DNA of 64,000 bases from Phaeosaccion multiseriatum. Lineage: Eukaryota; Protista; Ochrophyta, other classes. The stretch spans positions 2,480,001 through 2,544,000 of the forward strand of contig OZ218950.1 of NCBI GenBank assembly GCA_965112735.1. The letters run 5' to 3'. The translations under genes and the position numbers were made by a program. Positions 12,485 through 27,649 of the stretch are shown one piece after another. The notes under the pieces are model-generated. The model saw nothing but the letters and a program-made list of their open reading frames with translations. It was not told the origin of the DNA and did no database searches. Numbering within the stretch: position 1 is the stretch's first letter; every line of letters starts with the position of its first letter.

Positions 12485-15400
12485 CTAGCTGCTTGCCGCC
12501 ACCTGCTGCTGCTGTTCCTCCTCCTCCGCCTCCCCGCCCTTCTTCTGCTTCGCAACCCCCCCCCCTCGAGGCATGCTCATATCACTCCTCAGCGTCCCAC
12601 ACGATCGGCATTGTTCTCTCGCGAACATCGCTGCTCCACACTCCGTGCACATGGTCAGGGGTTTGCCCTCTTTGTTTTCTCGATAGTCTGCCCTGTCCGT
12701 GATAAGGCTCACGGCGGAGCTTTGCTTGAGGATGGAGAGGGTGCTGGCCACCACGGCATCGAAGGTCTGTGGGAAGGGGGTTTGGGGGAGAAGGGGGAAG
12801 GGGGAGGGAGGAGAGAGAGGTAAGTGAGAGAGCTAGAGAGAGAGAGAGAGAGAGAGAGAGAGACAGACAGACAGACAGACAGACAGACAGACAGACAGAC
12901 AGACAGACAGACAGACAGACAGACAGACAGACAGACAGACAGACAGACAGACAGAGAGATGGAGAGATGGAGAGAGAGAAACAAGAGCGAGAGGCTGAGA
13001 CAGAGGAAGAGGGAGAGGGAGAGGGAGAGGGAGAGAAGCTATGCATTACATAAGTAATATGTACGCATTACCTGGATCGTGGGTTCGCTCCCCTGCGCTT
13101 TGCCCGAGGCAGCGATGGCTTTGTAGCGCTCTGCACGGCCCAGGATATCGAGACGCAGCGCCTGAAGGAGAGGCAGCAGTTGGTAGTACAGCAGCAGCAG
13201 TTGGTAGTACAGCGGCGGCAGTGGCAGCAGCAGCAGTAGTAGCAGCAGCAGCAGAAGGTGGGGGAGGAAGGAGAGAAGGAGGAGGCGCACAAGGGCAGCA
13301 GCAGGAGGGCGGATAAGGCACTCTTTCGCATGTGGGGTACCCTCGACCGCAAATGGCACATGCGGCGTATTCGACTCGAGTCAGCCGCGCTCCTTCCCTC
13401 CCTGCTGAGTCCTTTCATTGTCTCCGACGCTAGCCCAAAGATGCCCACCCTCCCTCCTTCTTACCTCGCGTGCCTCGTCCCTCTCTGCGTCCCTCCTCTT
13501 TTGGAAGCTTACTGTGGCTTCATCCTCGAGGGATCGCTGTGCTCTTGCTTGCCCCAAGTAGCCATTGCCTTGGGCCCTTTTGTTGCGGATCACATTCCGG
13601 CGAATATCGCTGACCTGAGGGGAGGGAGGGGGGAAGGGGTAGGGGGGGGGGCTTAGTAAGCTAGTTGTTTGTGTAAGTTGGTGGTAAGTTGGTGGTGAGT
13701 AAGCTTGTTCTTAGTGTAAGTTTAGTTGCAGACCTTGGGACGGACCATGGGAGAGAGGGTGTGAGTGTGCGTGTGTGCGTGCGTGTGTGTGGGGGGGGGG
13801 GGTTCGTGGTGTGTGTGTGTCCAAGTGTAAAGAGGGGGGAACTGTGTTGTGTATGTGGGCGTACGTAAGTAGGTACGTATGCAATGCGTAAGAGTATGTA
13901 TGTGTATGTGTGTATGTATGTATGTATGTATGTATGTATGTATGTATGTATGTATGCGTATTACGTAAACACTCACTCACCTGCCACTTCATCCTCTCGA
14001 AGCGAATGGCCTTGGCAAGGTCTTTCTTACTCTTTCCAATGCCTCTCTGAATCTCGAGCCTTCGAAGTTGCTCCCGAGTCACCACCTCACGCACCGCCAT
14101 GTGGTCGAGATCGTTCTCAAGATCATCCACCTCCAACTGTTGGTGATACAGGAAGGGAGGGAGGGGAGGGAGGGGAGGGGGGGGTGTGGAGGAGAGAGGG
14201 AGAGGAAGGAGGGGGAGGGGTAAAGGAGGGCAAGCAAGAACGGATGAATGCCCAAGGGGGAGATGGCAAGCGAGCCATCCATTCAAGTGACAAGTCCACC
14301 ATCCAACCAACCACCCCCCCCCCCCATCTACTGCCATCCCCTCCCGCTCTACCGTCGGCGCTTACCAGGAGGTCGTGCAGATTCTGCTTCTGCTTGCGAA
14401 TGTGCACCTTCTGTAGCCGCATCTGTGAGTAGTGAGTGATTGAGTAAGGGATGAAGTGAGTGAGTGAGTGAGTGAGTGAGGGTGAGAGTGAGTGAGTGAG
14501 GGAGTGAGTAAGAGATTGACGTGAGGGAATGAAGTGAATGAGTGAGTGAGTAAGTGAGTGAGTGAGTGAGGGACATAGACAGAAGGTGGGGAAGGGAAGG
14601 GCAAGGGGAAGGGGGAGGGGCCACATGTTAAGGAAATTGGGACCACTTCTTGTATGTTCTGCTGATACAGGTCGGTGCCAGTAGTTTGCTATATCACCAA
14701 TGGATATATATCACAAAATGCTGTATCACCAATCGCTGTATCACCAAATACTGTTATCATCACCAATCGCTGTATCTATCATTCAGTCTGTCAGTCCCTC
14801 ACTCTTGACTCCCTCCCTCAACTCCTCTGTGCTTCATGCCCCTGCGTGCCTGCATCATGCCCTGCTCAAGTCACAGCAAGTCGTCATGTATACCACCAAC
14901 TGCTGCACACATTATTATATTAGTCAATGAATGACTCAGTCCCTCACCTCCTCTGCACTCATGCCCTTGCAGGCCTGAATCATGTCCCACTCGTTCTCGA
15001 AGTTCTCCGCCCATCCCTGCTCGAGATCTTCCACCGTCATGGCGTCAAGCTCCGCCTCCACAAGGGGGATGCGGTAGTCCACCTACAACAAGTTTGCAGT
15101 TTGCAGTTTGCAGTTTGCAGTTTGCAGTTTTCAATTTCAGTTTGATGTGACATCATCAATGTATACATCGAAAATAAGCTTCTGTGTTTACTCCACCTAA
15201 GCAAGTCAGTAAGTCAATGAATGATGGAAGGACAGGGGCACGCGGTAGTCCTCATGGAGGTGGTGGGGAGGAAGGAAGGAAGGAAGGAAGGAAGGGAGGG
15301 AGGAAGTCCAGTAATCAGAAAAGAAACCATGCACCCGTCTTCAGTGACATGCTATCCTCTCTATGGTGTCCTCTTATTCATTGACATTGACCCCATGTAT

Positions 15401-27400: not shown

Positions 27401-27649
27401 GCTACTACTCTGCCGAAGTCCTCCCATGGAGGAGCTCCGGCCAAGGCCCTCGGCAGGCACGGCAGCAGCGACAATTTCAGCATCATCACGTCTGCTTCCT
27501 CCTGCAGCAGCTGCGATAGCTCCAGACGAAGGGGTCTGTGGAGAAGTAGAGATTTTGCCACCTTCTGCATCTTGTCCTTCCACTACTGCCTCCCCCGAAG
27601 CCTCTGGTGCTGGAGATTGCTCGCCCTCTCTCTCTTCTCGATCAAGCAT
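12485..27649 (-). CDS. Large multidomain protein: PDZ, BolA-like (with AP2-like insert), IQ repeats, coiled coil, C4 RanBP2-like zinc finger (about 22 exons)
   Basis: I checked phase-consistent GT-AG junctions from the 27649 ORF (KAKL|IRVSNESY...YSMK|EDLEIV...GDS|RFTA...VPQ|ASDAE...AAA|MREVLY...AEG|NAMSKF...IQRIWRL|NCFSRA...) into the IQ exons ([74 protein letters not shown]). Coiled-coil exons lie at 16076-13981. The last exon contains [21 protein letters not shown] and stops at 12485. Confidence 0.8.
20861..21710. repeat. Intronic minisatellite, unit about 21-25 bp (ctctcctcatacactcacacact)
   Basis: More than 30 near-identical tandem units inside the 21831-20542 intron of the minus-strand IQ gene. 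Confidence 0.95.

Follow-up and report, generated by a model that had tools for sequence, protein, structure and literature searches.

A 64,000-nucleotide stretch of the Phaeosaccion multiseriatum genome (contig OZ218950.1, positions 2,480,001 to 2,544,000; termed the window here and used for all coordinates below) carries on its minus strand, between 27649 and 12485, what we model as one gene of 23 exons encoding a scaffold-like protein of about 1,860 residues. From its N-terminus the predicted protein would consist of a disordered segment, a PDZ-like domain, a BolA_H domain with a large insert in one loop, a low-complexity linker, an array of IQ motifs, a heptad-rich region and a CxxC-x9-CxxC knuckle. 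We give this complete reading about an even chance of being correct. If the gene model holds, the protein represents a new domain architecture, one that is unusual for BolA biology, encoded at what appears to be an orphan locus.

The DNA of the window is eukaryotic and GC-rich (about 58-59%), and the introns are packed with microsatellites. The gene model covers ~15 kb and contains 22 introns, all of the GT-AG type, which separate 1,858 codons (~5.6 kb of coding sequence) free of internal stops. A preliminary description of this DNA had proposed that phase-consistent splicing joins the domains, and a chain of 23 exons in phase was indeed obtained. The seven peptides quoted in that description were all located by sequence on the minus strand at the expected positions. 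Three belong to the PDZ region (a ten-residue peptide at 26941-26912, the core peptide at 26353-26270 and LTFRR at 26146-26132) and four to the BolA region, namely a ten-residue peptide in the tail of exon 1 (25798-25769), IRVSNES in exon 2 (25578-25558), the YFRV...FEAL motif in exon 3 (25041-24961) and a 12-residue peptide in exon 4 (24254-24219).

The BolA_H-like domain occupies residues ~614-834 (25810-24183, introns included) and is assembled from the tail of exon 1 and from exons 2-4. These four exons are joined through GT-AG introns, with phases 0/2/2/0, to give 834 stop-free codons. Exon 1 (27649-25739; residues 1-637) is a single open reading frame (ORF) running from the ATG at 27649 to the donor CTG/gtgagg at 25739, the slash marking the splice site. 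It encodes, in order, a disordered N-terminus rich in Ser, Arg and Gly, the PDZ-like domain, a linker and, at its 3' end, helix alpha1 of BolA. Exon 2 (25578-25451; acceptor ttgcag/ATC, donor GAA/gtgagt, phase 0 in and 2 out) supplies strand beta1 (IRVSNESY) and the start of the loop insert. Exon 3 (25303-24935), placed by Pfam BolA and by hhalign, provides the remainder of the insert including a 20-residue Gly run, the loop His, strand beta2 and the next helix. The candidate C-terminal His residues and strand beta3, the latter formed by the 12-residue peptide mentioned above, are contributed by exon 4 (24276-24183), which covers profile columns 76-89 and ends at the donor CAG/gtgagtaagt.

The Pfam scan covered single exons, and it matched BolA (PF01722) on exon 3 alone with an E value of 4e-4 and 21 bits over profile positions 27-60 of 76. 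The spliced domain was examined with local HMMER and hhalign, using a profile built from E. coli bolA, 120 enterobacterial BolA sequences, a betaproteobacterial IbaG and 80 IbaG relatives. This profile is narrow (Neff 1.7), the source searches having returned only close Enterobacterales and Rhodocyclaceae sequences. The exon-3 stretch is its sole match (19.6 bits, E 5e-5; runner-up 4.5 bits) among the 1,242 open stretches of the window, defined as stop-free segments of at least 30 amino acids in the six frames. With hhalign, exon 3 alone aligned to the profile at 91.4% with an E value of 9e-7. Spliced exons 3 and 4 aligned over 52 columns, exon 4 falling on columns 76-89 directly after those of exon 3, and the spliced domain with the loop excised reached 95.6% (E 1.3e-8) over 71 columns. 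Excision of the long loop raised the HMM score to 28 bits, against 18.9 bits for the core alone, because the junction of exons 1 and 2 rebuilds strand 1 (KAKL/IRVSNESY compared with lev-v-dESYrh in the profile). Shuffling of the flanks equalled this gain in three of 300 trials (p about 0.01, obtained with a narrower, enterobacterial-only profile). Three separately encoded pieces are therefore collinear with one BolA profile, and the three splice junctions are supported at the same time. An octapeptide, VVSKEFVG, is identical in the algal domain and in a betaproteobacterial IbaG from a metagenome (Ga0316604_10000141, 9335-9580), where this bacterial gene of the IbaG type lies immediately upstream of murA. 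Judged by profile comparison, the BolA assignment is sound, and the BolA call of the preliminary description is borne out by Pfam on exon 3 and by the matches of the spliced 25800-24183 region.

The BolA fold is of the alpha/beta type, with three strands and a winged helix-turn-helix. Three residues mark BolA_H domains (PMC7538681): a C-terminal His conserved throughout, a His or Cys located in the [H/C] loop between beta1 and beta2, and a Phe that is invariant. All three are kept here: the loop residue is the His of RHGYF just before beta2, the Phe lies in SKEF and a His near the C-terminus precedes beta3. There are two candidates for the latter (SRH and GCH), and the equivalent one is ambiguous. 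Three observations weigh against the assignment. Firstly, the Pfam score of the exon-3 piece is below the gathering cut-off of 25.7. Secondly, the published motif SxxF(x18)E(x5)H (PMC4415784) is approached but not reproduced exactly, with Asp in place of Glu and the His 7 or 14 residues further on rather than 6. Thirdly, the RHR of bacterial BolA has become ERC in the algal domain.

The [H/C] loop also accommodates an insert of 115 residues, N-terminal to the loop His and encoded on the minus strand by 25551-25451 and 25303-25062. It consists of ~75 residues of ordinary sequence followed by the Gly run. The two exon pieces, searched separately and not as one junction-spanning sequence, matched no protein family, AP2 included, when compared with Pfam, with PDB sequences, with phages by tblastn and with the ESM atlas. 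An AP2/ERF-like identity for the insert received no support from the exon pieces, neither of which produced an AP2 match in Pfam or among PDB sequences at E values up to 10. Matches of exon 3 to PDB sequences were swamped by scFv (single-chain variable fragment) chains with Gly linkers. The order of domains given in the preliminary description stands, and to it must be added this insert and a pair of probable exons that separate BolA from the IQ array, both missing from that account.

The PDZ-like domain spans residues ~233-507 (26953-26129, minus strand) and is split by low-complexity inserts of ~145, 20 and 30 residues. Its elements follow the canonical order. Strand 1 and a GLGF-type loop, PLGITF, come first, followed by ~145 residues of low complexity and then by the remaining strands and helix, among which are the two further inserts, one of them with a poly-Gln run. 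The PLGITF loop lies ~170 residues upstream of the core. Three related Pfam models match the same ~50 residues of exon 1 (423-475): PDZ_6 (E 2e-5, 24.7 bits, cut-off 27), PDZ (E 1e-3, 19.8 bits, cut-off 23.2) and PDZ_2 (E 2e-3, 18.8 bits, cut-off 27). All three are under the gathering score, which counts against a PDZ identity, and a single-sequence AlphaFold2 model of the stretch is poor (mean pLDDT 48.6), with two strands and a helix being the only elements formed out of the six strands and two helices of a PDZ fold. We retain the earlier PDZ call in the form of a PDZ-like domain, on the matches just below threshold. The fusion of this domain to BolA is firm because helix alpha1 of BolA lies in exon 1, in the PDZ frame, and no ATG occurs between the two; the ATG-free interval extends from residue 372, inside the PDZ-like domain, to helix alpha1.

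Downstream of the BolA region, exons 7-15 (21910-21832, 20540-20428, 20189-20040, 19182-19039, 18479-18314, 17897-17729, 17459-17342, 16872-16777 and 16580-16477) form an in-phase chain, with strong GT-AG sites, encoding residues ~1121-1501, the IQ array. Pfam IQ (PF00612) matches seven of these nine exons, in three cases above the cut-off of 20.3 bits (23.3, 22.8 and 23.4 bits). The strict pattern [FILVM]Qxxx[RK]Gxxx[RK] occurs eight times, once across an exon junction, and we estimate that the array holds about 10-14 motifs. The claim of about ten IQ motifs is in good agreement with this.

Exons 16-22 (16076-15959, 15564-15478, 15082-14948, 14422-14366, 14136-13981, 13614-13465 and 13161-13072) continue the in-phase chain with a charged, heptad-rich region. 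Three of them (14422-14366, 13614-13465 and 13161-13072) were found, or had their ends corrected, by direct reading, having been absent or mis-ended in an anchor-based pass. By a crude heptad score, two segments (residues 1512-1585 and 1612-1663) rank above the 99th percentile of shuffled sequences of matched composition; no Pfam family was found in these exons. What had been called a long coiled coil is accordingly kept as a heptad-rich region with two segments above the shuffles. The last exon (12766-12485) ends with the stop codon TAG at 12487-12485 and contains the CxxC-x9-CxxC motif at 12649-12599, which can be read directly as C-T-E-C, nine residues and C-R-S-C, as the preliminary description had it. 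Zinc-ribbon matches of this exon in Pfam are weak (E 0.18-0.54), and in the atlas the closest clusters, which are bL32 zinc ribbons, score 0.77, below significance. Pfam detected neither a motor nor a CH or other catalytic domain in any exon.

We consider next whether the two halves belong to one gene. Within the single-frame fusion that had been proposed, the PDZ-BolA part is secured by the shared exon 1; the junction between BolA and the IQ array is indicated by splice signals, phase and intron polarity. Splice sites were scored with matrices trained on the other introns of the gene. The exon 4 donor, CAG/gtgagtaagt, is the best of the 128 GT sites in 24300-21900 (14.4 bits), and among the 175 AG sites that lie between exon 4 and the IQ array, the highest score (12.6 bits) belongs to the acceptor at 21910, where the first IQ exon begins. 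Exon 4 ends in phase 0 and the exon at 21910 starts in phase 0, so that a direct join is in frame. The context of both sites is that of internal sites of this gene. The donor is followed by a gtgagt/gtaagt microsatellite typical of intron starts, and the acceptor is preceded by ~350 nt of CCTT repeat, as is seen for internal exons.

Introns of the gene have a marked polarity when read on the coding strand: 16 of 19 begin with a G-rich third (positive GC skew) and 18 of 19 finish with a C-rich third (negative skew). G-rich microsatellites (GGGAGG, GT, GGGT) occur after donors and C/T-rich ones (CCTT, CTGA, CTCA, CTGT) before acceptors. The interval 24182-21911 displays three such G-to-C cycles, and three introns therefore fit it better than one. 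Two probable exons would divide it. Exon 5 (23948-23854; 31 codons plus 2 nt, phase 0 in and 2 out) has the second best of the 175 AG sites as its acceptor (9.8 bits), and its flanking introns have the G-to-C polarity. Exon 6 (23384-22619; 255 codons, phase 1 in and 0 out) lies within a 366-codon open stretch, is of low complexity with a long Gly run and has no Pfam family. It may be shorter, since there is an alternative in-frame donor at 23015. The route through 23948-23854 and 23384-22619 is in frame, as is that using the shorter exon 6 ending at 23015.

The alternative is that two tandem genes lie on the same strand. One, with PDZ and BolA, would end soon after exon 4 or inside 23948-22619; the other, for the IQ, coiled-coil and zinc-knuckle parts, would start at an ATG in 23506-23383 or at 21904. 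Several findings point this way and weigh against a single gene. Read-through of the exon 4 donor reaches a stop after seven codons, and ATGs that would permit a downstream gene are present in exon 6, at the beginning of the open stretch 23506-22409 and, as part of NAMSKF, within the first IQ exon. The exon 6 acceptor is weak (2.5 bits), as are the donors of exons 5 and 6, and the content of exon 6 is largely of low complexity. Codon log-odds do not distinguish the frames in 24182-21911, GC content at third codon positions (GC3) is not decisive for exons 5 and 6, and no RNA evidence joining the two halves was found. Against this, no GT within 2.4 kb scores higher than the exon 4 donor, which carries a microsatellite of the intron-start type, the strongest acceptor stands behind its CCTT repeat, both sites are in phase 0 and the path through the intermediate exons is equally in frame. 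We judge that a single gene is probable on these splice signals, with two genes a possibility of lesser weight that deserves to be kept in mind.

Attempts to find transcripts and relatives were less rewarding. Three RNA runs compared with 24931-27649 matched only simple repeats at 26214-26255 and 26376-26416, CAG (poly-Gln) and GAG/GGA tracts that lie in the exon coding for the PDZ-like domain, and unrelated marine, animal and lung RNA runs share no other part of the locus. The word shares of 5-7% in these runs are repeat noise because only those repeats match. The only runs that contain the locus, among them one from the organism itself, cover exons and introns alike and so look like DNA. Homologue searches used single exons as queries, and the protein index was restricted to a length band. 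On these terms, a HMMER search of exon 3 against 1.84 billion representatives gave one low-complexity match, to a SAP-repeat protein, and no homologue; residues 230-636 of exon 1 gave none in a word index of 5.8 billion proteins; and residues 80-122 of exon 3 had no words in common with any candidate in the protein index. A scan of JGI metagenomes with exon 3 returned only bacterial IbaG beside murA. The gene looks lineage-restricted and, without homologues, there is no conservation support for its function or structure.

These results detract from the proposal of a functional gene, and they raise the prospect that the locus is not a working gene at all, being either in decay or a series of open stretches strung together by chance in DNA rich in GC and in repeats. 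The large low-complexity tracts and the ease with which long ORFs arise at 59% GC would fit such an origin. However, 22 GT-AG introns preserve phase over 5.6 kb of coding sequence without a stop, GC3 is raised in most of the small exons of the model and three independent profile families occur in a sensible order. We regard a non-working locus as highly improbable.

How might such a protein work? The exons, phases and profile matches described above were computed at the locus, and the steps that follow are drawn from the behaviour of the families elsewhere. IQ arrays form long helices that carry calmodulin-type light chains, heptad regions dimerize and PDZ domains bind the C-terminal tails of partners. 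BolA proteins are small and act together with monothiol glutaredoxins in sensing iron and in delivering Fe-S clusters. Two histidines of the complex allow a [2Fe-2S] cluster to be shared between a BolA_H domain and a CGFS glutaredoxin (PMC7538681). In the algal protein the IQ array would be a long helix coated with light chains of the calmodulin or centrin type, and the heptad region would pair two chains. The PDZ-like domain may grip a partner protein by its C-terminal tail, and the BolA domain could dock a CGFS monothiol glutaredoxin via a shared [2Fe-2S] cluster and its retained histidines. The loop insert would then place an extra module beside the cluster site, and the set of partners held by the scaffold would depend on Ca2+ and on the iron/redox state. 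Since the ligand residues are kept, the simplest reading is a dimeric calmodulin-coated scaffold able to dock a glutaredoxin. By analogy with these families, it is reasonable to infer that the protein may couple Ca2+/calmodulin to Fe-S/redox sensing, as the preliminary description suggested.

A more specific version of this idea has BolA forming a [2Fe-2S]-bridged complex with the glutaredoxin while the insert reads or gates the cluster, so that the cargo or location of the protein, set via the PDZ-like domain and the knuckle, is switched by Ca2+ and by iron/redox state. The protein would then be a dimeric, calmodulin-clad rod, with the insert folded and an Fe-S sensor built into a cytoskeletal or flagellar scaffold. 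This full version is speculative and we think it quite unlikely to be right in all its parts. A different possibility is that there is one gene in which the BolA module has no glutaredoxin partner and serves a structural or nucleic-acid-binding purpose, in the manner of KH-like or winged-helix folds, with the insert as a new, possibly DNA-binding, surface. In its favour, the insert occupies precisely the [H/C] loop that bears a ligand, ERC replaces RHR and the His spacing is altered; in addition, the annotation of E. coli BolA describes a DNA-binding regulator. Yet the module has kept its loop His, its invariant Phe and a His near the C-terminus, and neither AP2 nor any other family was detected in the insert pieces in the searches of Pfam, PDB sequences, phage tblastn and the atlas. 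We consider this alternative unlikely.

Comparison with known systems emphasizes what is unusual here. The domain resembles the stand-alone BolA_H proteins (E. coli BolA, IbaG/YrbA and human BOLA1) in the collinear order of beta1, beta2, the next helix and beta3, and in keeping both the His ahead of beta2 and a C-terminal His, as well as the invariant Phe. The stand-alone proteins have lengths of 80-140 residues, whereas the algal domain is distributed over four exons within a predicted protein of ~1,860 residues, is enlarged by 115 residues in the [H/C] loop and by ~8 ahead of beta3, and has ERC in place of RHR. BolA as a module of a larger protein has a precedent in Arabidopsis SufE1, a SufE-BolA fusion (PMC4415784). 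There the partner is a sulfur-transfer activator of the Fe-S pathway; in the algal protein BolA is combined with scaffold elements (PDZ, IQ and coiled coil) that have no connection with Fe-S assembly. Androglobin, a large chimera that combines a small cofactor-binding domain with a calmodulin-binding IQ motif (PMC13331133, PMC13696810), offers an analogy only. It has globin and calpain domains and a single IQ motif, and bears no sequence relationship to the algal protein.

Among scaffolds with IQ arrays, ASPM and the necks of myosins have tandem motifs, and class XVIII myosins combine PDZ, IQ and coiled-coil parts. The algal array is like these in having motifs ~23-27 residues apart followed by a coiled coil, which in the algal protein would be the heptad-rich region, and myosin XVIII starts with a PDZ domain, comparable to the PDZ-like one of the algal protein. 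In myosin XVIII, however, a motor domain sits where the algal protein has BolA. In the literature we found no paper that joins BolA to IQ or PDZ elements and no published description of the whole combination, in keeping with the view of the preliminary description, which had not recognized the architecture.

If the reading presented here is true, it would suggest that iron or redox state is sensed locally, at a particular structure of the cell, instead of in solution, and the protein would be a concrete construct with which to probe roles of BolA beyond Fe-S trafficking. The locus is also an example of algal genes hidden behind microsatellite introns, and the intron polarity described above may aid annotation in this genome.

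The long ORFs that adjoin the gene, at 27607-29492 on the plus strand (upstream) and at 6457-12555 (downstream), contain no Pfam family. The sole neighbouring ORF with a family match is located at 31657-32802 on the minus strand and encodes a DUF1824 domain (Pfam E 3.6e-9).

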